Below, one piece after another: positions 17,761 to 57,429 of a DNA stretch of 64,000 nucleotides (its first letter is position 1; the number at the start of each line of letters is the position of its first letter). The stretch covers positions 186,001 through 250,000 of the IMG/VR virus record IMGVR_UViG_3300050821_013430; one strand, written 5' to 3'. The notes below the pieces were generated by a model. It ran no database searches. It saw only the letters and a list, made by a program, of their open reading frames with translations, and was not told where the DNA came from. A program made the translations under genes and the position numbers.

Positions 17761-18068
17761 TATTCTAGGGAACACGCAGCGTCGAAATGATCTTTGCCGC
17801 ATTGAGCACACTTCTCATCCATCAATGATGACCAATCGAGGGATATTGAATTGCTATATGTAGAAGTTCCAAATCCTTCGTCATCGAAATATTTTTTGAT
17901 ACGATCACGATATTTTGGTGGCAAAGAGGCGTCAATAGCATAGGAGACATAGCCTCTTCCTTTGGTGGTGGCATCGAGAATGGTGCCTCTAATTTTGTCA
18001 ATTTCGTTTTTCATTTTGATAAGAAGACTGCGTTTGCTGTTGTTGGCCATTTCTTGGGCAAGTTTCAT
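17760..18068 (-). CDS. Hypothetical, 'DWS' paralog family, C-terminal CAQCGKDH tag
   Basis: Similarity to 24068, 24382 and 24762 ORFs. Confidence 0.6.
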   Translation of the reverse strand: MKLAQEMANNSKRSLLIKMKNEIDKIRGTILDATTKGRGYVSYAIDASLPPKYRDRIKKYFDDEGFGTSTYSNSISLDWSSLMDEKCAQCGKDHFDAACSLE

Positions 18069-18256
18069 TTTGATTTCTTCTTTGCTTTCTTATCTAACTT
18101 TTTGAGGTATGTTTCAACGGTATCAATTAGTTCTTCCAAATTTTCGGCAGCATAATCTGGTTCCTCGGCAGTTTCGGGATCAAAGCCTTTGGCCAAATCG
18201 TAATCGGTTTGATTGAGAATTAGGAGAATAAGGCTTTTGATTTGAGTCCTATTCAT
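18065..18256 (-). CDS. Hypothetical protein
   Basis: Coupled ORF. Confidence 0.5.
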   Translation of the reverse strand: MNRTQIKSLILLILNQTDYDLAKGFDPETAEEPDYAAENLEELIDTVETYLKKLDKKAKKKSK

Positions 18257-18473
18257 TTGGTTCCTTGTAATTTAGGATTTCAAGATAGGTTTCGTAGGGC
18301 ATCCACATTGTTGGCGTCCCGTCTTTACGACGGAAGACGACGAGACTATCGGGGTCATCGTCATCGGCAAACTCGCAATAATCGCCTTTTTCGTGTTTGA
18401 GGGGAGGAGAGAGTTTATCGAGAAGTCGGAGGGCTTCGAGTATTTCTTTGTTGTCGGAGGATTTGGTGGTCAT
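18249..18473 (-). CDS. Hypothetical protein
   Basis: Coupled ORF. Confidence 0.5.
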   Translation of the reverse strand: MTTKSSDNKEILEALRLLDKLSPPLKHEKGDYCEFADDDDPDSLVVFRRKDGTPTMWMPYETYLEILNYKEPNE

Positions 18474-18847
18474 TGAATATCAAATACCATTTTGATATCA
18501 CTGATAGGGTATAATTTATCCTTAAAATTATCTATATTGCTATAATCAACATCATCAGCATTAGAGATATTCATTCTACTTTGCATTTTATTATATTTTA
18601 CTTTATAGTATCTGCATTGCTTCTCGATAGAAGAAACTATTTCCAATTCGATGGTCGAATCATTCCTATTTTCAAATTCTCGTAAAAATCGCAAACAAGT
18701 AAGAGGAATATAACTCAATCCACTATATTTATTATTAGAAGCCCCGCCAGAAATGATTATTTGAGTAAAATTTTTTTCTATAAGAAAAGTATCATTTGTC
18801 AAGGAACGTCCGTCTAATATAATTTTCGCATCAAGTATTGTTGTCAT
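18470..18847 (-). CDS. Hypothetical protein (AT-rich)
   Basis: Coupled ORF. Confidence 0.45.
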   Translation of the reverse strand: MTTILDAKIILDGRSLTNDTFLIEKNFTQIIISGGASNNKYSGLSYIPLTCLRFLREFENRNDSTIELEIVSSIEKQCRYYKVKYNKMQSRMNISNADDVDYSNIDNFKDKLYPISDIKMVFDIQ

Positions 18848-18851
18848 TTTG

Positions 18852-19388
18852 TTATCCTATAATACCTTCGGCAGCCATTCTATAACCGTGAAGTGCAAAA
18901 AGTGCGCTATAACTTGCATAAATAAGCAGAAAAATTTTTCTAATCAATGATAGATCAAATCTATAAATTGTTCTTAATGCATATTTCCAAGCATTACATT
19001 CTTCTCTGAATATAATATTTATTGGGGATTGATCTAAATCATAATTTACACCCATTTCTGAAATGAAAATATTTTCTTCCCTATTATAATTTCCTGCCAA
19101 TAGAGAAAGATGGTGCCCATACTCATGAAATAATGTTGTTGTTTCGTGCAACAAAGAATAATCAGGAATTGTTAGCAATGATCGATGTATAACAATTTTA
19201 TTTGGATAATATTGTCCAATATTGTCCTTTTTTATATTTATTCTATCTTTTACGGTTTCATTGCTAAAAATGATTAGTGAAAATACACCATTTTTCATCC
19301 ACCTATCATAGTCATATCGTGAATCACACAATTTACGATCAATATAATGAAAAATATTATTATAAATTTGAGAATTAATTATTTGCAT
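18852..19388 (-). CDS. Putative HExxH zinc metallopeptidase (ImmA/IrrE-like)
   Basis: LFHEYGHHL and downstream EECNAW. Confidence 0.55.
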   Translation of the reverse strand: MQIINSQIYNNIFHYIDRKLCDSRYDYDRWMKNGVFSLIIFSNETVKDRINIKKDNIGQYYPNKIVIHRSLLTIPDYSLLHETTTLFHEYGHHLSLLAGNYNREENIFISEMGVNYDLDQSPINIIFREECNAWKYALRTIYRFDLSLIRKIFLLIYASYSALFALHGYRMAAEGIIG

Positions 19389-19684
19389 TAGTATAATTGA
19401 GGTTTATTCCCTTTGGCACAATCTTCGCACACACCCAATTCATTTTGATCGTAATAGTGGTGTTCGCTATCTCCAAATTCAAAATTACCGAAACAACAAT
19501 TACAAACTCGGTATTCGGAAACAAAAGCATTATTATCTACTGTTTTGACATCGGTAGGTGGTTCCCACCCAGTTTTTAATGCATCAACAAATCGCTGTCT
19601 CATTTGTTGAAAACAGGCAATGTTTGCGTCGCAAATCTCAATTTGATGATTTAAGTTTTGTCGTTTGATTTCATTAGCATCCAT
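19388..19684 (-). CDS. Hypothetical protein with Cys pairs
   Basis: GGAG SD; CNCC...CEDC. Confidence 0.5.
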   Translation of the reverse strand: MDANEIKRQNLNHQIEICDANIACFQQMRQRFVDALKTGWEPPTDVKTVDNNAFVSEYRVCNCCFGNFEFGDSEHHYYDQNELGVCEDCAKGNKPQLY

Positions 19685-19703
19685 TGGTTATTTCTCCATG
19701 TTT

Positions 19704-21363: not shown

Positions 21364-21364
21364 C

Positions 21365-21553: not shown

Positions 21554-21572
21554 TAAAACCTGCCGTTTGCAT

Positions 21573-21590
21573 GATATATACTTATATATC
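21573..21590. promoter_or_regulatory. Perfect inverted repeat GATATATA-CT-TATATATC between divergent genes (candidate operator or divergent promoter)
   Basis: Direct reading of the 71-nt intergenic region. Confidence 0.45.
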
Positions 21591-21624: not shown

Positions 21625-22674
21625 ATGGAAACTTTTTGTTGCTCGGTTTGTGCTCGCGATATGCCTCAAACATATAGATGTCGTGGAATGTGTTGTGCCT
21701 GTTATACTCGTCTTAGACGACACGGGGTTATCAGCAAGATAGATAAACCAATACTACCAATTTCTTTAACACCTGAACAATCAGCATATATCAACGGAAG
21801 TTTGCTTGGTGATGGACATATTAATTATTATAGCGGCACCGGAAATGCTTCTTTCCGAAAATTACGCTCACAAAAAGACAAATCATATCTTGAATGGGAA
21901 AGACAATTTCTGATTGATTTCTGCACACCATCCTCTAAGGTTTTTGATAGTTCTATATTTGACACGCGAACAAATAAATATTATTACCATTCACGGTTTC
22001 ATACACGATCATGTAGTTTATTTGGAGAATTATATGAAAAATGGTATCCAAACGGTATAAAAATTGTTCCTCGAGATTTGGAATTAACACCATTAACAAT
22101 GGCGATTTGGTTTTTGGATGATGGCGGAATAAGCATTAAGGGAAATAAGCCGCATCTATTTGAAATAAAAATAGCAACTGATGGATTTTTAGAACAAGAT
22201 GTTGAATTTTTGGCACATTTATTACAAGAACGATACAATGAATATTTTGCCGTTTGCAAACACGAAAAACATTTCATAATAAATGCTGCTACTATGGCCT
22301 CGCGTGCCATCATTAAGGATATTGATCCTTATATTCCAAAAGAAATTATGGAACGAAAAACTATAAAATGGAGAAATTCACTTTCTAAAATAAATGAAGA
22401 CATTTTTCTCGGCGGAAACGGCAAATTGAAAGAACAACGATTTTTACAAAATTTTAATGAGAAATTGCAAAATTTATTTAAAAGTAGTAAAAGTTTTACA
22501 ATTTCTGAAATCGGTGAAATGCTGGAATGTTTCAAATCTGTAAATGGACAAATTTGTATAAATAGAGATAAAGTATTAGGATACTTAGAAAAATATCTAC
22601 AAAATAATTTGATTACACAAGAAAAAATTGGTAGAAAATATGTGTATTCCTTTACCAAAGAATTTATGATTTAA
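21625..22674 (+). CDS. LAGLIDADG homing endonuclease (two-motif, I-SceI-like)
   Basis: YINGSLLGDGHI and MAIWFLDDGGI; N-terminal CxxC...CCAC. Confidence 0.8.
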   Translation: METFCCSVCARDMPQTYRCRGMCCACYTRLRRHGVISKIDKPILPISLTPEQSAYINGSLLGDGHINYYSGTGNASFRKLRSQKDKSYLEWERQFLIDFCTPSSKVFDSSIFDTRTNKYYYHSRFHTRSCSLFGELYEKWYPNGIKIVPRDLELTPLTMAIWFLDDGGISIKGNKPHLFEIKIATDGFLEQDVEFLAHLLQERYNEYFAVCKHEKHFIINAATMASRAIIKDIDPYIPKEIMERKTIKWRNSLSKINEDIFLGGNGKLKEQRFLQNFNEKLQNLFKSSKSFTISEIGEMLECFKSVNGQICINRDKVLGYLEKYLQNNLITQEKIGRKYVYSFTKEFMI

Positions 22675-23619: not shown

Positions 23620-24075
23620 TCAATCAGCAGCCCACTTTATCGCTGTCAATAAAAATCCATCCGCATTTTGCAACAATCTAAATTCGTTATAGTTCGCAAA
23701 TTCTCTGGTAAATTTTTCTACCAAGTCTTGTTCTTCTTGTATCGAAAGTTTGGGCACAAGAGGAATTAAAAGCCTACCATTTCTATATGAATAGCATTGA
23801 TTTGCTCGTATTGTTCTAAACCCATAATCTAATCCAACATAAGCGATAGCGTCATTTTCCCTTGCCTTAACCAATGGAATAGCGCCATATGGCAACTGGT
23901 CGGTGATAATTGCCTTTGGAAAGGTCTCTCGTCGTTTTCGTTCTCGATCAAGAAGATCTTGCAAATTGCTTTCTTTGCAACGCAAGCACTTATAGACTTC
24001 TCCATCTGTATGATACCAATCGCACACGATGGTGAGTTTATTATGACCGAAAAGGCGACACCAAAAGTTATTCAT
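23620..24075 (-). CDS. Hypothetical protein
   Basis: Start trimmed to MNNFWC. Confidence 0.5.
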   Translation of the reverse strand: MNNFWCRLFGHNKLTIVCDWYHTDGEVYKCLRCKESNLQDLLDRERKRRETFPKAIITDQLPYGAIPLVKARENDAIAYVGLDYGFRTIRANQCYSYRNGRLLIPLVPKLSIQEEQDLVEKFTREFANYNEFRLLQNADGFLLTAIKWAAD

Positions 24076-24391
24076 TTTCGTGAAATTGGCCACATTGCGC
24101 ACACGGTACCGGCATCCCACCGCTCCAATCGAGAGTAATCGTTGGCTTGCTGGTATAAGTAAGCCAAAGTCTAACTTTTATTCCCTCATCAGTAAAATAT
24201 TTCACCACCTTGTCAATATCTTGCTGCGACAAATTGAAATTCTCAATCCAATTGTAATGATCTACTTTGGTCTTACCATCCGCAGCGACATTCCACATAT
24301 CTTGTTTGAGATGATCGATTGCTTTTCTCGGTCTATCTTCAATGGCCTTTTTAGTTCCTATGCAAATTGTTTCGAGTAGGCTCATTGACAC
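24068..24391 (-). CDS. Hypothetical, 'DWS' family, C-terminal CAQCGQFH tag
   Basis: KYFTDEGI...LDWS...CAQCGQFH. Confidence 0.6.
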   Translation of the reverse strand: MSMSLLETICIGTKKAIEDRPRKAIDHLKQDMWNVAADGKTKVDHYNWIENFNLSQQDIDKVVKYFTDEGIKVRLWLTYTSKPTITLDWSGGMPVPCAQCGQFHENE

Positions 24392-24771
24392 GCCTCATGT
24401 ACCTCATGACATTGTGGGCAAGTATCTGGATAGGTATTGTTTGATTGCTTCATTTTGTCTGACCAATCAAAATAGACTAAAACATCATTATCCCATTCAG
24501 GATCGAAATCGTTCCAATCATCATCTTCATCATAATTGCAAGAAAGATCATTCACGAAAAATCCCTCATTCTCAAAATATTTCTTGATCTTTTTTCGATC
24601 TTTTTTGGAAAGTTTCTGCCACTTCTTCATTTCACGAAAATTATAGTGAGTTTTTCCTTTGATAGCCTTTTTCTTTATTCCATCAACAATCTTTTGTACT
24701 ATCAATGTATAATGACTATCTTTATTGTCTGCTGACAATTTACAAACCTCATCAATTAAATTCATTGGCAA
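24382..24771 (-). CDS. Hypothetical, 'DWS' family, C-terminal CPQCHEVH tag
   Basis: KYFENEGF...FDWS...CPQCHEVHEAC. Confidence 0.6.
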   Translation of the reverse strand: MPMNLIDEVCKLSADNKDSHYTLIVQKIVDGIKKKAIKGKTHYNFREMKKWQKLSKKDRKKIKKYFENEGFFVNDLSCNYDEDDDWNDFDPEWDNDVLVYFDWSDKMKQSNNTYPDTCPQCHEVHEACQ

Positions 24772-25061
24772 ACCTCATGCATCTCGCCACATTGGGAACA
24801 CGGCTTCTTTATATGCTTCGACCAATCTACTCTAATTGTATGAATGCCGGTCTGTTTGACCTCAAAACCCTTTTCAATTAATTCTTTGATGATTTTATCC
24901 ATTAGATGGGGTGAAAAACAATCGTAAAAAGTAAAAACCGTGCTTTCATTTCCGACTAAGGCCTTATTTTTGATATGGATATAGAGATTATCCATATCTG
25001 ATTGTATTTTTAATTTATTAGCCGCTTCTACTTCCTTTGCCATTTCTTCTGCTAAATTCAT
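24762..25061 (-). CDS. Hypothetical, 'DWS' family, C-terminal CSQCGEMH tag
   Basis: EKGFEV...VDWS...CSQCGEMHEVC. Confidence 0.6.
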   Translation of the reverse strand: MNLAEEMAKEVEAANKLKIQSDMDNLYIHIKNKALVGNESTVFTFYDCFSPHLMDKIIKELIEKGFEVKQTGIHTIRVDWSKHIKKPCSQCGEMHEVCQ

Positions 25062-26367: not shown

Positions 26368-26676
26368 TTATTTCTCTCCCAACTGATATGTAATACTAAC
26401 TTTTCTTACTTCCAATTCATCTACTGTAATTGGTTTTCTCCAATCGAATTTATTTGGAATAGTGCGAAAGCACCTGTAAGCAAGATCGAGCCCGGGAAAA
26501 TGTTTCCCTGCATCTGATTTCTTATCAAACAAATATACATTGAGAAGATCATCAGTGAAATAATACTCATAAACATATCCTGACTTTTGATATCCTACGC
26601 TATGTATGCCCTCTTCCTCTAAGAGAAGTTTGTTTTTAGGATCATATAGGACATATTTAGTTTGCGTCGTTTTCAT
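26368..26676 (-). CDS. Hypothetical protein
   Basis: ATGA overlap. Confidence 0.5.
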   Translation of the reverse strand: MKTTQTKYVLYDPKNKLLLEEEGIHSVGYQKSGYVYEYYFTDDLLNVYLFDKKSDAGKHFPGLDLAYRCFRTIPNKFDWRKPITVDELEVRKVSITYQLGEK

Positions 26677-27290
26677 TTCTTTATCTCGTGAATATTTCCG
26701 CACTGTGGGCAAACACACTCATCAAACTTCTGAGGTTTGACTACGCATACGCCTCTTGGATTGATGATCCCGATACCTAACTCGCCATCGTTTGTCTCTG
26801 GAATAACACCGAGAAATTTTGGATCAGTGATCAAAATCATATCATCACCAGTCAAATACTCCGATGTCATAATTTCCATTCCGTTGGAATATCGTCTGCC
26901 ATATACTTTTTCAATAGGCATCTGATCAATACTGGTGTTCTGGTGCGATACCATTATACGACTGCACATCAAATTCCAAGACTGAAATTTGTTCAATGCC
27001 TTCTCTATGGTAGGCACAACACGATCTGTAATTTCCGCCGCTTTGTATAGCGCTGAAATAAGAGCCTTATTGAAAGTCTCTACATCAGGAAAATGATAGG
27101 TAGGAACAATGCAGTGGTCGCCAAAAGTTGTGATCTCCGGCTCAAAACTACCACCAACATTTTTACCAATGACTACCCGTGGTAGATCAAAATCACATTC
27201 ATAGGATGGTGATGCGGTGCCCAACGGGTCTATAATTAGTATTTGCGCCAATGGATTTTTGTCAGTCAATTCTATGCTATTATTCATCAT
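26673..27290 (-). CDS. Hypothetical protein with C-terminal CPQCGNIH tag
   Basis: ATGA overlaps at both ends. Confidence 0.55.
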   Translation of the reverse strand: MMNNSIELTDKNPLAQILIIDPLGTASPSYECDFDLPRVVIGKNVGGSFEPEITTFGDHCIVPTYHFPDVETFNKALISALYKAAEITDRVVPTIEKALNKFQSWNLMCSRIMVSHQNTSIDQMPIEKVYGRRYSNGMEIMTSEYLTGDDMILITDPKFLGVIPETNDGELGIGIINPRGVCVVKPQKFDECVCPQCGNIHEIKK

Positions 27291-27670: not shown

Positions 27671-28771
27671 CTACTGGGTCGCTTCGTGCAACGCCGAAAC
27701 CTTGGAAAAGAAAGGCTGACAATTGAGCAACGCCCGATGCTGAACGACGATGTTCATCGGGAATGAATTTCTGATCCCCACCAATTCTATTTCTTTCTCA
27801 ACCGCATTGTCATCCAAGAAACGGCATAAGCGCTCTACATACCGAATTTTGGGTTTGGTGCCCCCATCAAAACACTTCAATTTCGCCAAATGACAAGCCG
27901 TGAGAACGAACACGAATTTTTCCGTTTGATCCAGTTTGGCATAATCGACGCCGCAGGTGCCCCGTTCCAAAAGCGAGTAAATGATCGGCTCGAAACGCTT
28001 GTAATGTTCGTGCCAAATTCTAAACTGAATTGCTGCCGCTGCTCCCACATAGCCTGCTATAATACTCTCGACGGTATCGAGATCATCCAAATTGAGTTTC
28101 GCTGCTTCTTGCATAGCATTTGACGCAAGCGTCCATCCGCGCGGTGATGGGCTGGCAAATTCAACACCGCTTTCAATTTCGCCGCACGCCAATTCGGGAT
28201 GCCTTATCAAAAAACCAAGAATAAGTTCATTGAGACCTGCATCCCGAGCCCATTTGATCCAATGTTGGAAATTGAAACTCAAAATAAACTTGGCACCTCG
28301 ATCGAGCAGGGCAGTGCTAATATTATTGGAATATGCGCCTTCGCTTATTAGGTTTCCCGTTAGAATGCACGCTGCGGCATTGATTGGCTTTCCATTTATT
28401 GTTCTGAATTGCAAAAGTTCCAATAATGGGGCAGTGATTTCACTATGGCACTTATCGACCTCATCAAATAGTAGGATTTGATCGGCCACGCCACCTTCTA
28501 ACTTGGGTAGGTAATAAGGCTGCTTATAGACGACCACATCCGAGGCATCGTTGAGGATTGGCCAGCCTGCGAGGTCTGGGCGTTCAATAACTGAGAGATT
28601 TACAATGCTAATTTTATAGCCCATCTCTCGTGCAGCCTGCAAGGAGAGAAAGGTCTTTCCAATACCCCTCCGCCCAAATAGGAATAAATTGCCCTCAGTT
28701 TTGATATTGAAACGGAGTAAATTGAGGGCTTCCTCTTGATTGATTTCTTTTAGGTTGAGGGCGTTTCCCAT
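27671..28771 (-). CDS. MoxR-like AAA+ ATPase (AAA_5), paralog 1
   Basis: Walker A GRRGIGKT, Walker B LLFDEVDK, LTGN, ALLDR. Confidence 0.8.
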   Translation of the reverse strand: MGNALNLKEINQEEALNLLRFNIKTEGNLFLFGRRGIGKTFLSLQAAREMGYKISIVNLSVIERPDLAGWPILNDASDVVVYKQPYYLPKLEGGVADQILLFDEVDKCHSEITAPLLELLQFRTINGKPINAAACILTGNLISEGAYSNNISTALLDRGAKFILSFNFQHWIKWARDAGLNELILGFLIRHPELACGEIESGVEFASPSPRGWTLASNAMQEAAKLNLDDLDTVESIIAGYVGAAAAIQFRIWHEHYKRFEPIIYSLLERGTCGVDYAKLDQTEKFVFVLTACHLAKLKCFDGGTKPKIRYVERLCRFLDDNAVEKEIELVGIRNSFPMNIVVQHRALLNCQPFFSKVSALHEATQ

Positions 28772-29650: not shown

Positions 29651-29923
29651 TCAATGCACCTTCTTACACTGCGGGCAACGGTCAATTCCGACCTGCATCT
29701 CTTTGACCACCGTATCAATCGGACAGCCATCCTTCGCGTAGTAGATGAAATCGGTTTTATCGAAATCGGGACGGACGAAATACTCATCAATTCGAGCATA
29801 TGCTTTGACCGTGCAGCCCTTGCACAGACACGCGTAGATGTCCATAAGCGGATACGACTCATAACTATCGGTAATCCGAACATCACTCCGCTTGCAGAGA
29901 TTGCAAATATCGAAGATCATCAA
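29651..29923 (-). CDS. Cys-rich hypothetical with C-terminal CPQCKKVH tag
   Basis: ORF track. Confidence 0.55.
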   Translation of the reverse strand: MMIFDICNLCKRSDVRITDSYESYPLMDIYACLCKGCTVKAYARIDEYFVRPDFDKTDFIYYAKDGCPIDTVVKEMQVGIDRCPQCKKVH

Positions 29924-30357
29924 TGCACCAAATTACACTGAGGACATCGGAGGGTGCGCAGGCGATCGACCGCATCGCTATATTCATTACCATAAGCAAC
30001 CAGCATCGGGTGATCTGGTGATTTGGCGGTAAGTTTCATCTCTTGATACATCTCTTTGGAACAATCAGGACAGAGATAAAAGAAACGTGAATCGATCGTC
30101 GAAGGGACTGAGATGTCTTTTTTGCAGAGATCACATTTAGAGGATATCATAGGTACCTGAATAGTTTGGAAGGTAATATTAGGGATGGTGTAAGTCGTAA
30201 GTGGAATATACTGCGTATAGTATGGATAGGTATAAGTAGTCGTATTCGTATTGAAATACGTTCCCGTACCAGTGAAAAAGGAATTAGTAAGAAGTGTAGA
30301 AGTTCCGGTGGTGGTGTATTGATAATAGCCGGTATTGATGGGAAAAGTTGATGTCAT
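29920..30357 (-). CDS. Thr/Tyr-rich hypothetical with C-terminal CPQCNLVH tag
   Basis: ORF track. Confidence 0.55.
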   Translation of the reverse strand: MTSTFPINTGYYQYTTTGTSTLLTNSFFTGTGTYFNTNTTTYTYPYYTQYIPLTTYTIPNITFQTIQVPMISSKCDLCKKDISVPSTIDSRFFYLCPDCSKEMYQEMKLTAKSPDHPMLVAYGNEYSDAVDRLRTLRCPQCNLVH

Positions 30358-30372: not shown

Positions 30373-30624
30373 TTAGGGGTGTTCTTTGCCGCACTGAGGA
30401 CAGTTTGGTCTCTCGGCCTTCATTTTGATAACGGTTTCATCGGCCATACTGGTGAGAGGATAATAGTATCCGTTGATTACTGTCGGATCGGTCGGGCCCC
30501 AATGACTGCCTGTTTTGGCCCAACAAGTGTTGAGCATTTCGGCAGCACAGATGGGGCATAGCACCCGATAGTGTTGTTCAAAATCTTTGTCAAACCCCGG
30601 CTTGTTGCATAATTCACAGTTCAT
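30373..30624 (-). CDS. Cys-rich hypothetical with C-terminal CPQCGKEH tag
   Basis: ATGA overlap. Confidence 0.55.
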   Translation of the reverse strand: MNCELCNKPGFDKDFEQHYRVLCPICAAEMLNTCWAKTGSHWGPTDPTVINGYYYPLTSMADETVIKMKAERPNCPQCGKEHP

Positions 30625-30842
30625 TGATGGCTTTCTCCACATTGAGGACAATAACCATTGTCTTTCTTGAAAGAGATGATCATACTATCAACAGCGCTCG
30701 TGGCTGCATATCCAAACCAATCGGCGGAATAAATATCACCGAATGTTTTCGATAACCCTGCTTTATAGAAGCATTCCCGGCAAATAACCCTATTCCAAGA
30801 GCCTGAGGAATACCCAGGCTTTTTACACATCTCACACTTCAT
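30621..30842 (-). CDS. Cys-rich hypothetical with C-terminal CPQCGESH tag
   Basis: TGATG overlap with IscA-like gene. Confidence 0.55.
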   Translation of the reverse strand: MKCEMCKKPGYSSGSWNRVICRECFYKAGLSKTFGDIYSADWFGYAATSAVDSMIISFKKDNGYCPQCGESHQ

Positions 30843-31165
30843 CAGAAAGCCACCGATTTTCCGCAGCCGCAAGAGCCTTCGGCAAGAGGCGAATTGAAAC
30901 GAAATCCTGAAGACATCAATCCATCTTCGTAATCTACCGTCGTGCCCTCTAAGTATTGGGCGGACATACTATCGATCACGATCTTGACGCCATCCTGCTC
31001 GGTGATCTCATCCATTTCGTTGGTGATATCATCGAACATCATATCGCGGGTAAATCCCGAACAGCCCCCGCCTTTGACGCAAATTCGGATGCTGAGATGT
31101 CCAATATCCATCTCTTCCGACATCTCTTTCAGTTTAGCGACTGCTTTTTCAGTTAGTATAATCAC
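30842..31165 (-). CDS. A-type Fe-S cluster carrier (IscA/ErpA/HesB family)
   Basis: LTEKAV...GGGCSGF...IDxxSxxYLEGTTVDY...F.FNSP...GSCGCGKS. Confidence 0.92.
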   Translation of the reverse strand: MIILTEKAVAKLKEMSEEMDIGHLSIRICVKGGGCSGFTRDMMFDDITNEMDEITEQDGVKIVIDSMSAQYLEGTTVDYEDGLMSSGFRFNSPLAEGSCGCGKSVAF

Positions 31166-44132: not shown

Positions 44133-44357
44133 TTAGTCGGTAGGTTTTTCTACCGTCTCAATGGTAATGAGAACACGCTGACCAATTTTGAGTTGATCAG
44201 CGATAAAAGGCTTGATGATCAAACTACCATCAAAAAGGGCTTCTTTGGCGGTAGTGGGTGTATCGAGCACGCTGCCATCGCATTTGATGGCGATATTGGT
44301 TTTGGAATCATTGATCTTCACCACATCACCAAACTTACCAGTTAGAACGACTTTCAT
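44133..44357 (-). CDS. Hypothetical protein
   Basis: ATGA overlap. Confidence 0.5.
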   Translation of the reverse strand: MKVVLTGKFGDVVKINDSKTNIAIKCDGSVLDTPTTAKEALFDGSLIIKPFIADQLKIGQRVLITIETVEKPTD

Positions 44358-44554
44358 TGCTTGCTCCTTTTGGGAATGGCCCGCACCCGAGGATAACTCT
44401 CTTCCCAGTGCCCCGCGTCGTCGCATCCAATTGCTGTCAATAGATGCCTATCTATTTCGCAGCACTTCTTACACCAATAAGCATATTGAGTTTCACGGGA
44501 AAGATATACAGGCATATCCGTCTCTTGCTCGCAGTGATCGCAGAAGGTTTTCAT
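44354..44554 (-). CDS. Small zinc-finger-like protein
   Basis: CDHC...CKKC; ATGA overlap. Confidence 0.5.
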   Translation of the reverse strand: MKTFCDHCEQETDMPVYLSRETQYAYWCKKCCEIDRHLLTAIGCDDAGHWEESYPRVRAIPKRSKQ

Positions 44555-44805
44555 TCGTGTTTCTTTCCGCATTGGGGACAAATGCCAAGATCAATGATTT
44601 GGGTTTTGAGTTTGGCTACTTCTTCACGAAGTTGGGCCAAATCGTTTTCAACCTTCTTTTCGGGAAAGAGCGGCTCCTCGAAAAAGATGCCGGTGCAGCC
44701 ACCACTAACAGGGCTGAAATATGCCACCCCAGAAGCCATAGAACGAATGGGCTCACCAGAAACGCCTGATGGGCCGGTAGGCCCGGATATGATGTTGTTG
44801 TTCAT
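44551..44805 (-). CDS. Hypothetical with C-terminal CPQCGKKH tag
   Basis: AAGGAG SD. Confidence 0.55.
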   Translation of the reverse strand: MNNNIISGPTGPSGVSGEPIRSMASGVAYFSPVSGGCTGIFFEEPLFPEKKVENDLAQLREEVAKLKTQIIDLGICPQCGKKHE

Positions 44806-44861: not shown

Positions 44862-45095
44862 TTAGTGTTTTTGTCCGCACTGAGGGCAGAGATCGGTGGG
44901 CCAATCCAATTGAATTGAAGGAATGTAGAGATATTGAATTGGGTTTGGGAGTTGAATTGTGCAAGTATAAGTCCCGGTTTCCACATCAAAATTGGAAGAG
45001 AGTATTTTGAGTTCGGGGATGAGTTCATCCTTAGGCCAAATCTCAGACATCAATTCCAAATAGGTCGTTATGTTTTGGCCATCATCCTTGGTCAT
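44862..45095 (-). CDS. Hypothetical with C-terminal CPQCGQKH tag
   Basis: ORF track. Confidence 0.55.
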   Translation of the reverse strand: MTKDDGQNITTYLELMSEIWPKDELIPELKILSSNFDVETGTYTCTIQLPNPIQYLYIPSIQLDWPTDLCPQCGQKH

Positions 45096-45432: not shown

Positions 45433-46368
45433 ATGAATAAATATGTTTGCAACGAGAAAATTTTCACCACAGAAAATGCTTTGTCATTTTATTTGCTGGG
45501 TGTATTTTTGACTGATGGCTGGATCGAAAAATCCAAGCCAAATTTAGTAGGATTTTGTTCAACAGATTTCGAATGGATCAGAGATATCAAAAATATTATA
45601 TCTTTGGATTTACCATTGCATACTAAGAAAACGAAATATAAAAATTTATACCATTTTGAGATGAATAATAAAATTATACGAAAATGGTTTGACAAATATG
45701 GATTTACTACAAATAAATCATTAGATATACAATTTCCAAAAATACCAAATGAATATATCATAAGTTTTATTAGAGGGTGTTGGGATGGCGACGGATTTAT
45801 ATCACATACATCTCGACACAAAACGGGTGGGCGTCATAATAAAGATATTTTATATCACGATATAAGTTGCGGAATTTCATCGGGAAGTAAAAATTTTATT
45901 GACGAAATGGGTGCCAACATAACAAGAATATTTGACATCGATGTCAATATAACCAATAAATTTTCAGAAAAACCTGATGCATTATATATCGTGGGTAGAA
46001 AATGTATTGATATACACGAGCATTTTATGCTGCGAATAAATGGAACTAAATGTTATAAATTTGTTAAAATGCTATATGACGGGGCTGAAATATTTCTTGA
46101 AAGAAAGAAAATAATAGCGGATGATGTTATCAACTATTATAATACAAATAACATTATACCACACGATAAAATTATGTGGCCAAAAATTGATTTACTCGTA
46201 GCAATGGTAAATAATAAAGGTTATAGGGCAGTTGGTCGAGAACTAAATACAACAGACTGCACAGTCAAAAATCATATAAGAAGTAATAATAAATTACATC
46301 TTGTAAAATCACCTTTCGTATCATTTGGTAGTAAAAATACGCAAGACAATATTAGTCAGCAGAAATAG
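45433..46368 (+). CDS. LAGLIDADG (DOD-type) homing endonuclease
   Basis: YLLGVFLTDGWI and FIRGCWDGDGFI; AT-rich. Confidence 0.8.
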   Translation: MNKYVCNEKIFTTENALSFYLLGVFLTDGWIEKSKPNLVGFCSTDFEWIRDIKNIISLDLPLHTKKTKYKNLYHFEMNNKIIRKWFDKYGFTTNKSLDIQFPKIPNEYIISFIRGCWDGDGFISHTSRHKTGGRHNKDILYHDISCGISSGSKNFIDEMGANITRIFDIDVNITNKFSEKPDALYIVGRKCIDIHEHFMLRINGTKCYKFVKMLYDGAEIFLERKKIIADDVINYYNTNNIIPHDKIMWPKIDLLVAMVNNKGYRAVGRELNTTDCTVKNHIRSNNKLHLVKSPFVSFGSKNTQDNISQQK

Positions 46369-47782: not shown

Positions 47783-49132
47783 ATGCCAGCAAAGAAAACA
47801 ACAGAACAGTTCGTCCAAGATGCTCGTTGTGTGCATGGCGACACCTACGATTACTCTATGGTCATTTATATCAACAGCGCTACAAAAGTGCAGATTGGCT
47901 GCATCCAACACGGGATTTTCTTGCAAACGCCCAACGATCATTTAGGCGGACATGGCTGCAATAAATGTGCCAAAATAATAACTGCTAACAAGAAAAGAAG
48001 AACAAATGATAGTTTTATTGTTATGGCAAACGAAACTCATGGCAATAAATATGATTATTCACTTGTGGAATATTGTGATAGTCTTACAAAAGTAAGTATT
48101 AAATGCTCTAAACACGGAGTATTTAGTCAGACCCCAGCGAGACATCTTTCTGGTCAAGGGTGTCCTAAATGTGGCAGAGAAAAAGCAAATGATAGCATGC
48201 GCAAGGAACTATCTGATTTTATCAACGAAGCGATAAGCATACATGGCACTACATATGATTATTCATTAGTTGAATATATTACAACACATAAACCAGTGAA
48301 TATAATATGCAAAATTCACGGAAATTTCCAACAGACGCCACACGGTCATTTAGAAGGCCGTGGGTGCCCAAATTGTGGCTATGAATGCGTATCACAAAAA
48401 CTTTTATCTAATACAGGTGCCTTTATACAGAAGGCACAAGAAAAATATGGAAATCTATATGATTATAGTTTTGTTGAATATATCAGTAGTCATATACCGG
48501 TGTTAATTGTATGCCAAAAACACGGACTTTTTAGTCAAAAACCAATAACACATTTACAATATGGTTGTGTGCAATGTGGTTATGATACGACCAGTGAAAA
48601 ACTCTCATATACACTTAAAGAATTTGTGGCGAAGGCAGATATTATACATCATGATAAATATGACTATTCCAAATCAATATATGTGGGGTCTCGATCCGAG
48701 ATTTGCATTAAATGCCCGCAACATGGAGAATTTTGGCAGAAACCCGTAACTCATCTCAGGGGTTCTGGGTGTCCCAAATGTGGGAAATCTATTTCCAATG
48801 TAGAAACCATGTGGCTTGATACCGTTGGTGTCCCAAATGACAAAAATCATAGACAAGTATTGATTAGGATTACCGATGCACAATCTAAAAAGAAGCGTAT
48901 TATAGTTGATGGATTTATGCCGGAAACCAATACGATTTACGAATTTTTAGGAGATTTCTGGCACGGAAATCCATCAGTTTTTGATCTAAATACTATCAAT
49001 GCTGCCACTCATACAACTTTTGGAGAGTTATATGAAAATACTATTGAACGAGAGCGACTAATCAAACAAGCAGGGTATAATGTTGTCAGTATTTGGGAAA
49101 ATGAATGGCATAGAATAAAAAATGCTATGTGA
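47783..49132 (+). CDS. Putative homing endonuclease with 5 DUF723-like repeats and PD-(D/E)XK-like domain
   Basis: Five CxxHGxFxQxPxxH...CxxC repeats; IVDGF...YEFLGDFWHGNP. Confidence 0.72.
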   Translation: MPAKKTTEQFVQDARCVHGDTYDYSMVIYINSATKVQIGCIQHGIFLQTPNDHLGGHGCNKCAKIITANKKRRTNDSFIVMANETHGNKYDYSLVEYCDSLTKVSIKCSKHGVFSQTPARHLSGQGCPKCGREKANDSMRKELSDFINEAISIHGTTYDYSLVEYITTHKPVNIICKIHGNFQQTPHGHLEGRGCPNCGYECVSQKLLSNTGAFIQKAQEKYGNLYDYSFVEYISSHIPVLIVCQKHGLFSQKPITHLQYGCVQCGYDTTSEKLSYTLKEFVAKADIIHHDKYDYSKSIYVGSRSEICIKCPQHGEFWQKPVTHLRGSGCPKCGKSISNVETMWLDTVGVPNDKNHRQVLIRITDAQSKKKRIIVDGFMPETNTIYEFLGDFWHGNPSVFDLNTINAATHTTFGELYENTIERERLIKQAGYNVVSIWENEWHRIKNAM

Positions 49133-51014: not shown

Positions 51015-51015
51015 C

Positions 51016-51237
51016 TTAGTGATCTCCTCCGCACTGCGGGCAGCATTCCTTGAAAGTCAGGAAGCCTGACTTTGATTTTCCGGGCTCTGTGGTGTAATAC
51101 TTACAGACACGCGCCATCCGTGGGCCCCAATTACCTACACCGGTAGCGATATAGGTTTTGACATCTCTGTCATTATGCACGCCCATACATCCGTTCCCTG
51201 TCGTACAACACCAGACATTTCTATCTAACACACTCAT
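51016..51237 (-). CDS. Hypothetical with C-terminal CPQCGGDH tag
   Basis: ORF track. Confidence 0.55.
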   Translation of the reverse strand: MSVLDRNVWCCTTGNGCMGVHNDRDVKTYIATGVGNWGPRMARVCKYYTTEPGKSKSGFLTFKECCPQCGGDH

Positions 51238-52049
51238 ATCTGTACTTCCTTTACCCAGTGAATTGTCCGCCCGTCTTTGGCTTGGCTTCGGATTACCGGA
51301 TTACCCAATGGGTCTTGCTTTTGTCCATAGACCTTGAATTGGTCGTAGAAGGTACCCACATTTCCATACAAGTCGGAATAGGTGGCAATGGTCGCCCCGC
51401 CCGCATCATAAGCCTCCCGTACGATCTTGATCAGAGACTTGCAGAGAGTGGTAAGTTGAGTATGGGTTAGTTGGCTGACCAATGTATCAGGCTTGATTTT
51501 AGCGGCATAGAGAGCCTCCGCCCTTAGATAATTCCCAGTTCCGCAAAACCATCTTTGATCTAGCATCACCTCAGCGATGGTCTTATGACCACGAGCCTTT
51601 TGCAGTTTGGCAATGAAACCCTCTGGTATATGGGGCCATTCCAAGGCATCCCAGCCCAAGGTATTCAGTTTCCGAAAGGTGTCCATTCGAGAACTGATCT
51701 TGAAAGTCCCAAAATGTCTTGGGTCATTGAAGTAGATGCTACCATTGTCGAAGTCAAATTGAAGGGCAGAGTGCTTTTGCTTCTTGCCAAAAGAGCCCGT
51801 CATTCCGAGCGTGATATGGAAATCAACATCGGCATTGTTGCTGTCAAATGCTTGCCAATAGAGAAACTTGCCCTTGCAGCACATTCGCACATTGGTAAGC
51901 GGCCAATCGAGCCTATCCAAAAGGGCGTGGGTAATATCCATTCCTTTCCCGAAGCGCCCTCCTATTACTGCAATATGGGCCAAATTATGACCTCCAAATT
52001 CAGCATTGAGTTGATTGGTTATGCGTTTGACTTCGGCCGATTCAGGCAT
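51234..52049 (-). CDS. Fpg/Nei-family DNA glycosylase/AP lyase lacking the C-terminal zinc finger
   Basis: N-terminal PE, KGKF, LGMTG, DPRHFG, H2TH LDQ...GTGNYLRAEALY. Confidence 0.88.
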   Translation of the reverse strand: MPESAEVKRITNQLNAEFGGHNLAHIAVIGGRFGKGMDITHALLDRLDWPLTNVRMCCKGKFLYWQAFDSNNADVDFHITLGMTGSFGKKQKHSALQFDFDNGSIYFNDPRHFGTFKISSRMDTFRKLNTLGWDALEWPHIPEGFIAKLQKARGHKTIAEVMLDQRWFCGTGNYLRAEALYAAKIKPDTLVSQLTHTQLTTLCKSLIKIVREAYDAGGATIATYSDLYGNVGTFYDQFKVYGQKQDPLGNPVIRSQAKDGRTIHWVKEVQI

Positions 52050-52051
52050 CG

Positions 52052-54645: not shown

Positions 54646-54669
54646 CCTCTACTTGTAATTCCACACCAT

Positions 54670-55213: not shown

Positions 55214-55215
55214 TG

Positions 55216-55617: not shown

Positions 55618-55618
55618 A

Positions 55619-55972
55619 TTAGTGTCCTTTCTTACTTGGTGTTTGTCTCGTTATCGTTTCTATCTGTCTATACATCTTGGCTGCCTCCCCTAACTCGGGA
55701 ACATTATGGGCATACTTTTCCGCTACTTCCAAAACATAGAGAAGGTATTGCAGTTCCATTTCGGCATAATATGGGTCTTCGTGTAGTTCGGGTTTGAGAT
55801 ATGGTCGTAGGCTTTCTTCTGACCATTTTGGATTGGCCTCGCGTACGGCAGTGTTGCGCTCTTTGTTCATTACTCGTGCGCAAATTTTCACCGGGTTGAA
55901 CATATGCTCTGCGATATACTTACAACCTTCTTCGGTCGAAAGGAGTTCTTCCAATGACTTCTTATCGCTCAT
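55619..55972 (-). CDS. Hypothetical protein
   Basis: GGGAG SD before MSDKK. Confidence 0.5.
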   Translation of the reverse strand: MSDKKSLEELLSTEEGCKYIAEHMFNPVKICARVMNKERNTAVREANPKWSEESLRPYLKPELHEDPYYAEMELQYLLYVLEVAEKYAHNVPELGEAAKMYRQIETITRQTPSKKGH

Positions 55973-56237
55973 AATGTCTCTCCCATCCCTCAATAAATCC
56001 ATCCACAAAGCATTGCAGTTTGATTTGCCTCGCGTCGCCCAATGTATCCCAAGTTGCCCTTTTGATCATCAGCCGTGAGGTATGACCGGCTTCGACATTT
56101 ACGAAGTCAGTCCAAATACCTCGCTCTATTCCCAGCCAAATGGCTACTTCATATGCCGCATCATTCAAGCAGTCTTCTTCTTTGGAAGTGCCAAGACAAT
56201 AAGTCTCGATCTCGTTGCCTTCATTGTCAATCATCAT
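55962..56237 (-). CDS. Hypothetical protein
   Basis: Coupled ORF. Confidence 0.45.
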   Translation of the reverse strand: MMIDNEGNEIETYCLGTSKEEDCLNDAAYEVAIWLGIERGIWTDFVNVEAGHTSRLMIKRATWDTLGDARQIKLQCFVDGFIEGWERHYER

Positions 56238-56413
56238 ATCTGTCCCATCAAAATTGACCTAACTATTTTCATCTTCCTCTGCCATTCGGCCAATAACTCT
56301 TCACTCTCTAAAAGTTCTCCAAGTCGTTCTTCCAATGCTTGATGATCTACGGGCCCTTCCCATAAATCACCAAATACTACCTTGTTGATCTTTTTGACTG
56401 TTAGTTTCTTCAT
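56234..56413 (-). CDS. Hypothetical protein (59 aa, not in ORF track)
   Basis: Manual translation MKKLTVKKINKVVFGDLWEG...; ATGA overlaps at both ends. Confidence 0.5.
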   Translation of the reverse strand: MKKLTVKKINKVVFGDLWEGPVDHQALEERLGELLESEELLAEWQRKMKIVRSILMGQI

Positions 56414-56646
56414 CCCTCAAATCCTCCCTCTATTTTCTTGCCTTGCTTGATCATCTCGGCCGCTTTGGCAAATGCCTCGGCTTCGGCGCAATGGCTTGTT
56501 GCCCACCGCATAACTAAAACTTCCTCCGCATCTTTGAGAGCTTTCTTTTCCAATGAGAGCAAAAACTCCACCACCTTGGTGCGCATTTCTTCATAGCCTT
56601 GATCATAACTATCGTGTAAGTCTTCCATATTGATACCAAGTGCCAT
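56410..56646 (-). CDS. Hypothetical protein
   Basis: Start trimmed to MALGIN. Confidence 0.45.
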   Translation of the reverse strand: MALGINMEDLHDSYDQGYEEMRTKVVEFLLSLEKKALKDAEEVLVMRWATSHCAEAEAFAKAAEMIKQGKKIEGGFEG

Positions 56647-56657
56647 CGTATTTTTCT

Positions 56658-56894
56658 CTATCGGGGATTTATTGACCGGACATAGATGTTGTCCTGCCCC
56701 ACACAAACTGCTCGATTTGGATAGCAGGCTTGAATTGGATCGTCGCCGCAAACCATTTTGCAGGCACTCATTTGCATTGCTTGCTCCCTCACACCCGCGC
56801 CACAATAAACAAGCAAAAATCCAAAACTTACCAGCATAAGCAGCGCAAATCCGACCGTGCCTGCGATCTCCCAAAATTGTTCTCGTGTCATCAT
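56658..56894 (-). CDS. Small membrane protein with Cys-rich C-terminus
   Basis: One TM helix followed by four Cys; ATGA overlap. Confidence 0.5.
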   Translation of the reverse strand: MMTREQFWEIAGTVGFALLMLVSFGFLLVYCGAGVREQAMQMSACKMVCGDDPIQACYPNRAVCVGQDNIYVRSINPR

Positions 56895-57127
56895 TGAAGT
56901 TTCCGACAATAGCAAGCGTTAGGTGTAGGGAATGGTTTAGAGAAGCAATTCCCCTGTAAACAAGTAGCCCGATCGGGATCATAGCAATTTGTTGAGCAGG
57001 ATGCATAGTGGGCGCCACGACAATCGAGCGCATCAACATAACACGAGTTCGAGTTAGGGCAATCTGCTGCCGCGAGCGAGGTACCCACCATCAGTGCCAA
57101 ACCTAAACCAATCATTACCTTCTTCAT
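56891..57127 (-). CDS. Small secreted Cys-rich protein
   Basis: Signal peptide MKKVMIGLGLALMVGTSLA followed by 9 Cys; GAGG SD. Confidence 0.6.
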   Translation of the reverse strand: MKKVMIGLGLALMVGTSLAAADCPNSNSCYVDALDCRGAHYASCSTNCYDPDRATCLQGNCFSKPFPTPNACYCRKLQ

Positions 57128-57129
57128 TG

Positions 57130-57429
57130 TTATACCTCGTTATCTAATCCACACATCAATCTAAAACACTGCGGGCACCTATCATAATGACCGTATTTGA
57201 GCACCTTGGATATCTGAATGTTATTGGCAGGCCTGCTGGTAAATTTGGGAGCCATCATCCAATCCGTCTCGTATGAATCCGTTTTGGTTAGAATTGGATT
57301 CTTATGGGGTAATTCCAATCTGACGCAGCAGCCAGCACCACACGTGCTAATCACGCAGCCTTGTATTACTATGTTGCCAATTGTAGCGGAAACAATATCT
57401 CCCTTGTTGATTTCGGATAGCGCAATCAT
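57130..57429 (-). CDS. Hypothetical with variant tag CPQCFRLMC
   Basis: ORF track. Confidence 0.5.
   Translation of the reverse strand: MIALSEINKGDIVSATIGNIVIQGCVISTCGAGCCVRLELPHKNPILTKTDSYETDWMMAPKFTSRPANNIQISKVLKYGHYDRCPQCFRLMCGLDNEV

Follow-up and report, generated by a model that had tools for sequence, protein, structure and literature searches.

The stretch of phage DNA examined here raises the question of why small proteins with bodies that are not detectably related end in the same eight residues, Cys-x-Gln-Cys-x3-His. This stretch, termed the window, is 64,000 nucleotides long and belongs to a 472-kb contig of a huge uncultured phage. A preliminary description, based on the sequence alone, had listed 12 such octapeptides and one variant and had proposed a portable terminal address tag that completes a metal site with a common partner. 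To determine whether the motif is real, we searched all six frames of the window for C.QC...H. The 12 octapeptides were found at the nucleotide positions that had been listed, all on the minus strand, 0-8 residues before a stop and in ORFs with 77-204 codons upstream, and no other match was present, whereas 200 mononucleotide shuffles gave a mean of 0.09 matches (maximum 1). The variant CPQCFRLMC was also present. Synonymous codons were split about evenly (TGT/TGC 7:5 and 6:6 for the two Cys, CAA/CAG 6:6 for Gln, CAT/CAC 6:6 for His), so selection acts on the peptide, as had been claimed. A fourth Cys was confirmed in the three carriers said to have one. No carrier has a significant Pfam, PHROG-function or NCBIfam assignment. 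The observation therefore stands, and it is larger than first described. One statement was wrong, namely that only four carriers are paralogs: once the tags were removed, 8-9 of the 12 carriers fell into two families, A and B, and only three carriers and the variant are singletons within the window.

Features carrying or bearing on the C-terminal motif (positions refer to the window unless a prefix is given; L087 and L044 are sequences outside the window)
Position	Strand	Length (aa)	Feature	Tag and its position	Residues around the tag and remarks
17760-18068	-	102	Carrier, family A	CAQCGKDH, 17787-17810	Followed by FDAAC (fourth Cys, H-x4-C)
24068-24385	-	105 (from ATG)	Carrier, family A	CAQCGQFH, 24080-24103	Tail ENE
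24382-24765	-	127	Carrier, family A	CPQCHEVH, 24397-24420	Tail EACQ (fourth Cys, H-x2-C); body hits phrog_3012 (E=4e-8) over residues 3-79 only
24762-25061	-	99	Carrier, family A	CSQCGEMH, 24777-24800	Tail EVCQ (fourth Cys, H-x2-C)
26673-27290	-	204/205	Carrier, singleton	CPQCGNIH, 26688-26711	Preceded by C-x-C; the 72%-identical ortholog in L003 keeps the tag
29651-29920	-	89	Carrier, family B (N-terminal CxxC...CxxC finger plus tag)	CPQCKKVH, 29654-29677	His is the last residue
29920-30357	-	145	Carrier, family B with a Thr/Tyr-rich N-terminal extension	CPQCNLVH, 29923-29946	His is the last residue
30373-30624	-	83	Carrier, family B	CPQCGKEH, 30379-30402	Followed by Pro; protein modelled by AlphaFold2
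30621-30842	-	73	Carrier, family B	CPQCGESH, 30627-30650	Followed by Gln; directly downstream of the IscA-like gene
30842-31165			IscA/HesB-type gene (Pfam E=5e-19)		Directly upstream of the four family-B carriers
44354-44554	-	66	Family-B body without the tag		Ends ...IPKRSKQ where paralogs continue into the tag; start overlaps the stop of carrier 44551
44551-44805	-	84	Carrier, singleton; Gly/Pro-rich N-terminus, then a helical stretch (a coiled coil in the preliminary description, not tested here)	CPQCGKKH, 44557-44580	Followed by Glu
44862-45095	-	77	Carrier, possibly a distant family-A member (shares the strand-LDW-tag arrangement only)	CPQCGQKH, 44865-44888	His is the last residue
51016-51237	-	73	Carrier, Cys-rich singleton between the Fpg/Nei glycosylase and NAD-ligase genes	CPQCGGDH, 51019-51042	Preceded by an extra Cys; His is the last residue
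57130-57429	-	99	Variant carrier	CPQCFRLMC	Cys in place of His at a different spacing, 6 residues before the stop
L087:376-654			Family-B body without the tag
L044:3408-5627		739	Double-AAA+ protein with a Clp_N domain		Stop overlaps the start of a tagged gene

The idea of a terminal tag had been made to depend on the motif being commoner at C-termini than at internal positions, and we therefore examined its location beyond the window. About 138 kb of the same phage, roughly 29% of the contig and made up of loci fetched because they hold tags, contains 87 motifs; all lie within 12 residues of a stop and none is internal. At least 84 tagged genes were seen in this fraction. Elsewhere the same octapeptide is almost always internal, for example in the TnpB zinc ribbon CPQCGxxHDRD. 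A 285-kb relative keeps the tags, but they are lacking in a more distant syntenic relative, in cultured phages and in 185,579 cellular genomes. Whether orthologs keep or lose the tag had likewise been put forward as a test. The 72%-identity relative L003 keeps 9 tags in 20 kb, including one on a different body at the syntenic position of ORF 29651. Conversely, rare family-B bodies without the tag exist, one in the window, one in L087 and one in a five-repeat protein (P0004), so body and tag are separable.

It had also been stated in advance that the proposal would fail if all carriers proved to be one divergent family. Firstly, a profile comparison (hhalign) of family A against family B aligned only the 13 tag columns (probability 95%, E=3.6e-8). 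Secondly, Blast clustering of 124 tag-stripped bodies gave 25 clusters, with about ten body types outside the ribbon family. The bodies have different predicted architectures: an alpha/beta body with PHROG matches in family A, a Cys-finger body in family B, Cys-free and Trp-rich bodies, and a 205-aa protein. An alternative is that the knuckle is a purely structural staple spread by descent within one fast-evolving superfamily of small zinc proteins, stabilising small folds with no common partner and no address function. In its favour, about two thirds of all 124 carriers belong to two families, small phage proteins diverge beyond detection quickly, and CPxCG knuckles are generic stabilisers, 43 small C(P)XCG proteins occurring for example in Haloferax volcanii (PMC10716476). 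However, a staple would not need an invariant non-ligand Gln or a fixed distance to the chain end, and the N-terminal finger of the same proteins shows no such non-ligand invariance. We consider this alternative unlikely, although much of the sharing of the tag is by descent.

To assess the constraint on individual residues, family B was used as a profile against 1.84 billion cluster representatives from metagenomes. About 80 diverged small proteins were found, and all 77 that were read end in the tag. In an alignment of 83 sequences, with a mean column identity of 18%, only C3, C6, C23, C26, C75, Q77, C78 and H82 are invariant. Among the 124 carriers, P at position 2 of the tag (100 of 124) and G at position 5 (87 of 124) fit the classic CPxCG knuckle. 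The tail after the His is 0 residues in 32 carriers, 1 in 65 and 2 or more in 27; 97 of 124 (78%) thus stop 0-1 residue after the His, and of the 27 longer tails 9 have a Cys and 15 have Asp/Glu. An AlphaFold2 model based on the 83-sequence alignment (pLDDT 86.6, pTM 0.75) predicts that the N-terminal knuckles and helix 24-34 form a complete four-Cys finger. In this model the tag is a separate terminal hairpin, bracketed by single bridge residues at 74 and 81 and of lower confidence (64-74).

These data bear on the proposal that the tag is an incomplete three-ligand half-site to which a single common partner of phage or host supplies the fourth ligand, so that zinc bridges every carrier to the same docking, packaging or localisation machine. 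Most carriers have no conserved fourth protein ligand, the tag is the least confident part of an otherwise confident model and may need a partner to become ordered, and Gln and the chain terminus are conserved like recognition elements. Intermolecular zinc sites exist, as in the Rad50 hook, the RNase E Zn-link, the CD4/Lck clasp and Tat/cyclin T1. Against it, family A usually carries its own fourth Cys (8 of 10 members) and several carriers have an extra Cys just before the tag; these already have four ligands and need no partner. No candidate partner co-occurs specifically with the tags in the data examined, and genes near the tags in the window (IscA-like, MoxR-like AAA) are also present in a tagless relative. 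There is a simpler answer to the apparent lack of a fourth ligand, since a tail Cys or a carboxylate can fill this role, and the half-site proposal appears improbable. The initial interpretation is thus only partly supported: peptide-level selection, strict C-terminal position, sharing by bodies that are not detectably related, the invariant Gln and the absence of a matching described family are upheld, but no result here shows a partner or a function in localisation, packaging or degradation.

Two further alternatives came from neighbouring genes. The tag might be a recognition signal or degron routing carriers, or targets bound by them, to a phage-encoded Hsp100 unfoldase for timed removal, unfolding or remodelling. 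L044 encodes, inside a tag array, a ClpA/B-like protein that matches the ClpA model end to end, and a weak serine-protease-like (Nal1_C) ORF follows. C-terminal degrons with a free terminus are the rule for bacterial AAA+ proteases, as with ssrA for ClpXP and the terminal His of SulA for Lon. This is, however, a single adjacency in a genome where tagged genes are everywhere; by eye no ClpP-docking [IVL]-G-[FL] loop is seen in the second AAA module, the only distant homolog found lies on a contig without tags, and the window itself holds no such gene. The unfoldase is only a lead, and this explanation is very unlikely. Alternatively, the Cys2His end, alone or in dimers, might ligate an Fe-S cluster delivered by the phage IscA-like carrier or act as a thiol redox switch, given the position of the IscA-like gene and the existence of Cys3His and Cys2His2 clusters (mitoNEET, Rieske). 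However, the IscA-like gene is conserved in the syntenic relative L147, which has no tags. The CPxCG preferences are typical of zinc knuckles, and three ligands per chain with no conserved fourth is a poor fit for known cluster sites. We regard this possibility as remote.

The explanation that we favour, with about even confidence, is that the motif is a lineage-specific, autonomously folding C-terminal zinc knuckle with the pattern C-[P]-Q-C-[G]-x-[hydrophobic]-H-COOH. In this view, the two Cys and the His would be three metal ligands and the fourth would be a Cys in a short tail (most of family A) or a carboxylate, either the chain terminus itself or an Asp/Glu in the tail. The knuckle would be the constant end of a very large set of small accessory proteins of one clade of huge phages, most of them paralogs of a family with an N-terminal treble-clef-like CxxC...CxxC finger, and would also have been joined to about ten other unrelated bodies. 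As the non-ligand Gln and the position at the very end of the chain are as conserved as the ligands, we infer that the knuckle is not only a structural staple, and we read it as a common handle presenting Gln and the free terminus to one shared partner while the variable bodies bind different targets. The analysis itself establishes the motif, its exclusivity to C-termini, peptide-level selection, confinement to one phage clade, presence on bodies not detectably related, the invariant Gln and the distribution of tail lengths; metal binding, the identity of the fourth ligand and the existence of a common partner are inferences. Metal binding was not measured, ligand geometry was not checked, and a terminal carboxylate is an unusual zinc ligand. 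Strict C-terminal position could simply reflect that nothing after the His is needed, and invariance of Gln could have a purely structural cause not apparent to us. A bolder reading, not excluded but doubtful, is that the tag is a proteome-scale address signal, a zinc-folded C-terminal peptide marking a large share of the small accessory proteins. It would be read by a dedicated phage machine that routes, assembles, imports, packages or removes them, candidates being the ClpA/B-like unfoldase, a compartment import system or the capsid packaging system. This would be a sorting code invented by a virus of bacteria.

Huge phages carry hundreds of small genes of unknown function, and here at least 84 of them share one short invariant terminal motif that can be searched with a regular expression. 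This gives a single experimental handle on a whole class of 'dark' phage proteins: one peptide, four residues to mutate and one pull-down. If the motif is only a zinc staple, it is a compact new terminal knuckle of the form Cys2-His-carboxylate and a clear case of motif grafting onto unrelated bodies. If it is read by a common partner, it would be, as far as we can tell, a first example of a virus-encoded C-terminal sorting or docking code in a bacteriophage. It would also offer a small portable tag for protein engineering.

Short zinc knuckles are already known, and the motif was compared with described systems one by one. The haloarchaeal C(P)XCG micro-proteins (HVO_2753 and HVO_0758 type; PMC10716476) are also large sets of very small proteins built around CPxCG knuckles, and in the ribosome-associated archaeal relatives the last knuckle lies at the very C-terminus. 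However, they use pairs of knuckles to make Cys4 sites and have no invariant Gln, no His ligand and no single terminal knuckle shared across unrelated bodies, whereas family A and the Cys-free family have one knuckle only. Model hits were far below threshold (PF07754, E=0.022 in 2 of 26 family-B members; HVO_0416, E=0.067 at 13 bits against a cut-off of 80). The retroviral-type CCHC knuckle (zf-CCHC, PF00098) is likewise a short self-contained Cys-Cys-His-(Cys) site within about 14 residues, and family A members read C-x2-C-x3-H-x2-4-C. The retroviral spacing is C-x2-C-x4-H-x4-C, whereas all 124 carriers have C-x2-C-x3-H, a following Cys is absent in over 90% of them (present in only 9), and there are no aromatic residues at the base-stacking positions. 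No Pfam hit to it was obtained at E<=1 for ten window carriers, at E<=0.01 for the other three, or among the top 25 of 47 sub-threshold families listed for the 26 family-B members at E<=0.1. Of a LIM domain, which has two consecutive fingers (C-x2-C-x16-23-H-x2-C then C-x2-C-x16-21-C-x2-(C/H/D)), only one half-finger is resembled by the N-terminal C-x2-C-x16-C-x2-C-helix of family B (CRP1 1b8t, E=7e-4), and Foldseek found no PDB match for the whole model. The motif is not a c-type haem site CXXCH, as three residues separate the second Cys and the His in every carrier. Nor is it a zinc-binding anti-sigma motif H-x3-C-x2-C, as the order is reversed and no anti-sigma domain hit was found for the window carriers. 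In the TnpB/OrfB zinc ribbon the identical octapeptide CPQCGxxH is frequent, but it is the second knuckle of a Cys4 ribbon running straight into the RuvC DRD motif, and the carriers have no nuclease domain. The Rad50 zinc hook and the RNase E Zn-link share a lone CPxC(G) knuckle that cannot complete a tetrahedral site by itself, but they are internal, contribute two Cys per chain and make homodimers, whereas here a His is also invariant and the motif is terminal. The closest functional analogy to an address tag is the SEC-C motif (PF02810), a portable metal-binding tail of about a dozen residues at the very C-terminus of SecA and of unrelated proteins, which in SecA docks onto a common partner, SecB. 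The extreme C-terminal position is shared, but the SEC-C pattern is different (C-x-C-x8-C-H/C, four ligands), it is cellular rather than phage-encoded and has no Gln, and the same Pfam searches gave no hit to it. Finally, poxvirus ankyrin proteins with a C-terminal PRANC/F-box-like domain are a virus-encoded multigene family in which variable bodies share one constant C-terminal module that plugs into a common machine; as that module is a 40-50-residue helical domain with no metal, in a eukaryotic virus, the analogy is one of logic only.

To determine whether the C-terminal motif is real, the window was scanned in six frames for C.QC...H. The observation made in the preliminary description held in full: exactly 12 matches were returned, each at the position reported for it, all on the minus strand, 0-8 residues before a stop and in ORFs with 77-204 codons upstream. 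By comparison, 200 shuffles of the window gave 0.09 matches on average and never more than one. The tetrapeptide C.QC occurs 16 times in six frames and thirteen of these are the carriers, including ORF 57130 with the variant CPQCFRLMC. Within the 12 tags, the synonymous codons of Cys, Gln and His are split about evenly; selection therefore acts on the peptide, and a DNA- or RNA-level signal was rejected on this basis. Many tags are followed by ATGA or TGATG overlaps with the next gene, which is the usual translational coupling of phage gene arrays. An artefact of ORF calling or a recoded stop was also rejected, because the ORFs are well delimited by these overlapping junctions and orthologs end at the same place.

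The window is part of IMGVR_UViG_3300050821_013430, a 472,749-bp uncultured viral contig, and a second 221-kb contig carries the same sequence. It encodes rIIA- and rIIB-like proteins, an NAD-dependent DNA ligase, a T4-type RNA ligase, a polynucleotide kinase/phosphatase, a UvrD-type helicase, an Fpg/Nei glycosylase, adenylosuccinate synthetase (PurA), an IscA-type Fe-S carrier, a MoxR-type AAA protein and several homing-endonuclease-like genes. No cultured phage is close: a megablast search with 7 kb of the window and tblastn searches with two carriers found nothing among cultured phages. The window is 41% GC whereas other stretches attributed to the same 472-kb contig (L033, L044, L129, L244 and L257) are 44-53% GC, reflecting either strong compositional heterogeneity or a joined or binned record; both parts carry the tag.

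To assess how the carriers are related, their sequences were compared after removal of the tags. The carriers 17760, 24068, 24382 and 24762 are mutually related and were termed family A, while ORF 44862 shares with them only a hydrophobic strand ending in LDW just before the tag. ORFs 29651, 29920, 30373 and 30621 form family B, defined by an N-terminal C-x2-C-x12-20-C-x2-C finger. ORFs 26673, 44551 and 51016, and the variant 57130, are singletons in the window. The carriers thus belong to fewer families than the preliminary description, which counted only four paralogs, had supposed. None has a significant Pfam or NCBIfam family. Family A bodies match PHROGs of unknown function, mainly phrog_3012, and one is annotated Fe-S-cluster redox domain; those matches cover only the part that precedes the tag. 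It had been suggested beforehand to ask whether orthologs elsewhere lack the tag; for family A this was not tested directly, as a word-indexed search found the family only in the two related phages. Searches of the literature for the motif and for similar phage families found nothing relevant.

The phenomenon is far larger than the window. DNA-pattern scans of IMG/VR brought in other stretches of the same contig: L033 holds 11 tags in 7.3 kb, L044 holds 9, L129 holds 18 in 12 kb, and L244, L247, L257, L260, L072, L087, L112 and L127 hold more. An excess of the motif at C-termini over internal positions had been named as a condition for the proposal to stand. After removal of duplicates, about 138 kb of this phage holds 87 occurrences, every one of which lies within 12 residues of a stop, and 84 are in ORFs with at least 40 codons upstream. 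These loci were fetched because they contain tags, so that the density is not to be extrapolated, but at least 84 tagged genes in one genome is a firm lower bound. A relative, ENA ERZ25039590 contig_19309 of 285,913 bp, has an ortholog of ORF 26673 at 72% identity and has 9 tags in 20 kb, one of which sits on a helical 71-aa protein at the position where the window has the family-B gene 29651.

In contrast, the motif was not found as a terminal tag outside this clade, apart from rare hits. In other IMG/VR contigs the octapeptide CPQCGxxH is almost always internal, typically as the second knuckle of the TnpB zinc ribbon followed by the DRD motif, and only two foreign hits are near a C-terminus. 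An origin of the tag from TnpB was rejected because the carriers have no nuclease domain. The pattern CPQCGxxHP-stop occurs in IMG/VR essentially only in this phage, and in 596 Gb of bacterial and archaeal genomes it gave only out-of-frame chance hits. A metagenome scan based on PurA identified a more distant relative (L147, PurA 48% identical) that keeps the gene order PurA, IscA-like, MoxR-like, kinase/phosphatase, RNA ligase, but has other small genes in place of the family-B run and no tag at all. The huge phage LR756500.1, whose rIIA is 34% identical, has none in 41 kb.

Family B was then examined with a profile of 26 sequences searched against 1.84 billion cluster representatives. About 80 small proteins of 64-104 residues match end to end, and all 77 whose sequences were read end in C-x-Q-C-x3-H plus 0-6 residues; the remaining hits are multi-finger, LIM-like proteins that match only the N-terminal finger. 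In the alignment of 83 sequences the mean column identity is 18%, and the only invariant columns are the four Cys of the N-terminal finger and C75, Q77, C78 and H82. The Gln is thus as conserved as the ligands, whereas no non-ligand residue of the N-terminal finger is. No stretch of the family-B alignment was conserved enough to serve in a search for related loci, and short metagenome contigs encoding family-B members added little.

The tag is portable. That all carriers might prove to be one divergent family had been identified in advance as an outcome that would undo the proposal; profile-profile comparison of family A with family B aligned 13 columns, exactly the tag, and nothing else (probability 95%, E=3.6e-8). 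Blast clustering of 124 non-redundant tag-stripped bodies gave 25 clusters, which besides the finger family include family A, a Cys-free Trp-rich family, a Cys-rich family with a conserved YGW motif, the 205-aa protein and several singletons. A beta-rich family with a conserved W..RF.VV motif was recognized later, by eye, in loci fetched after this clustering. Body-only profiles found family-B bodies that lack the tag, in the window and in L087, and a metagenomic protein with tandem family-B bodies also lacks it. Body and tag are therefore separable in both directions, although most of the copy number still comes from paralog expansion. A purely structural staple inherited by descent would fit this expansion, but fits neither the invariant Gln nor the tag-only similarity between families.

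Over 124 carriers, position 2 of the tag is Pro in 100 and position 5 is Gly in 87, which is the classic CPxCG zinc knuckle; position 6 is mostly charged and position 7 mostly hydrophobic. After the His the chain ends at once in 32 carriers and after one residue, often Pro, in 65. Of the 27 longer tails, 9 contain a Cys, mostly in family A as H-x2-4-C, a further 15 contain Asp or Glu, and only 3 have none of these. A first AlphaFold2 model built with 26 sequences was too poor at the C-terminus (pLDDT 57), whereas the alignment of 83 sequences gave a confident model of the product of 30373-30624 (pLDDT 86.6, pTM 0.75). In this model, the first knuckle and the second Cys pair at the start of helix 24-34 make a complete treble-clef-like four-Cys finger, followed by a strand and helix 60-71. 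The tag is predicted to be a separate terminal hairpin, bracketed by single bridge residues at 74 and 81 and with a lower confidence of 64-74. The whole model has no structural neighbour in the PDB or BFVD by Foldseek (all E>=1), and profile and peptide searches of PDB sequences gave only generic CPxCG or LIM-half hits.

Genes lying near the tags were considered for indications of function. A ClpA/ClpB-like gene lies inside the tag array of L044, which raises the possibility that the tag is a signal for a phage unfoldase. This reading rests on one adjacency; by eye, no ClpP-docking loop is seen, and a distant homolog of the unfoldase lies on a contig without tags. Likewise, an Fe-S or redox site is suggested by the IscA-like gene neighbouring the family-B carriers, but that gene is also present in the tagless relative L147. 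These and other features are listed in the table below.

Features of the window and of related loci that bear on the tag or were observed alongside it
Location	Strand	Feature
window 5127-5957, 5954-6805, 6805-7632	-	three tandem paralogs of about 280 aa sharing similar C-terminal sequences (...KNW..FI..LK...); not annotated
window 21625-22674, 45433-46368, 58702-59700, 47783-49132	+	three LAGLIDADG-type genes and one DUF4379/DUF723 treble-clef homing-endonuclease-like gene, interrupting otherwise minus-strand gene arrays
window 27671-28771, 37017-38444, 35975-36889, 38441-39436	-	a MoxR-like AAA gene and a DUF2201 metallopeptidase/VWA gene, the latter flanked by two paralogs of about 300 aa with nearly identical basic C-termini and no Pfam match
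window 29920-30357; L003:6977-7435 (locus of the 285,913-bp relative); protein P0087	- (window)	one family-B lineage with a conserved Thr/Tyr/Asn-rich low-complexity N-terminal extension of about 70 aa
window 30373-30624		family-B carrier modelled with AlphaFold2
window 30842-35392	-	run of an IscA/HesB-type Fe-S carrier, adenylosuccinate synthetase, and rIIB-like and rIIA-like genes directly upstream of the four family-B carriers; the IscA-PurA pair is conserved in L147
window 44354-44554		family-B body without the tag, stopping just where its paralogs enter the tag
window 51234-52049	-	Fpg/Nei-type glycosylase with a C-terminal domain without Cys residues in its last 22 residues (possibly a 'zincless finger'), immediately upstream of the Cys-rich carrier 51016-51237 and the NAD ligase
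L044:3408-5627, with L044:1853-2821 and L044:3148-3411 (same phage)	-	739-aa ClpA/ClpB-like double-AAA+ Hsp100 with a Clp_N domain and no middle domain; its stop overlaps the start of a tagged gene, and an ORF with a weak Nal1_C (serine-protease-like) hit follows
L087:376-654 (same phage)		family-B body without the tag
L147:7714-9414 (tagless relative)	+	RNA ligase of 566 aa that appears to contain an intein-like insert, with a Cys at the start and His-Asn at the end of an inserted block
protein P0004 (metagenomic, 405 aa)		five tandem copies of the family-B body (finger plus aromatic motif), with no C-x-Q-C-x3-H tag between or after them

The sequence preferences, the Cys-Cys-His triad within eight residues and the predicted hairpin point to a small metal site, most likely zinc, that folds on its own. 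The distribution of tails suggests that the fourth ligand is a tail Cys where there is one; otherwise it would be a carboxylate, either the chain terminus 0-1 residue after the His or an acidic side chain. In this view no partner is needed to complete the site. Portability and selection on the peptide are supported directly by the sequences, whereas the metal site and its fourth ligand are inferences, as no metal was measured and the model coordinates were not inspected. The preliminary description had proposed instead a three-ligand half-site completed by a common partner. This remains possible but is weakened by family A, and by carriers with an extra Cys next to the tag, which already have four ligands.

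Two features go beyond a structural staple: the exposed-position Gln is invariant across unrelated bodies and the motif is fixed at the chain end, both of which are typical of short terminal recognition motifs. We therefore favour, with moderate confidence for the model as a whole, a zinc-folded end acting as a constant handle read by one partner while the variable bodies bind different things; the metal-knuckle part is considerably more certain than the common-partner part. Overall, the interpretation given in the preliminary description is only partly supported: the tag is portable and peptide-selected, but paralogy was underestimated, the three-ligand argument is not compelling and no partner is shown. 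A bolder possibility that is not excluded, although we consider it unlikely, is a proteome-scale C-terminal address code read by a phage machine, which would be of very high interest if true.

Finally, the tag was compared with described families and fails the defining features of each one tested. It differs from the retroviral CCHC knuckle in its spacing, in the fourth Cys and by the model, and from the SEC-C tail of SecA by pattern and model, sharing with the latter only the terminal position and the logic of a portable zinc tail that docks on a partner. Compared with haloarchaeal C(P)XCG micro-proteins, it has a single knuckle and only sub-threshold scores. Only half a finger of the LIM domain is present, and only in family B. 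The tag does not fit the ZAS motif or the CXXCH haem site, and haem c attachment was rejected because the His is not adjacent to the second Cys. Zinc knuckles as such are known; what is new is a terminal Cys2-His knuckle, inferred to bind zinc, used as the constant end of a very large phage protein set. The tag would work like a zinc knuckle, but it is not a member of any described knuckle family that we could test.
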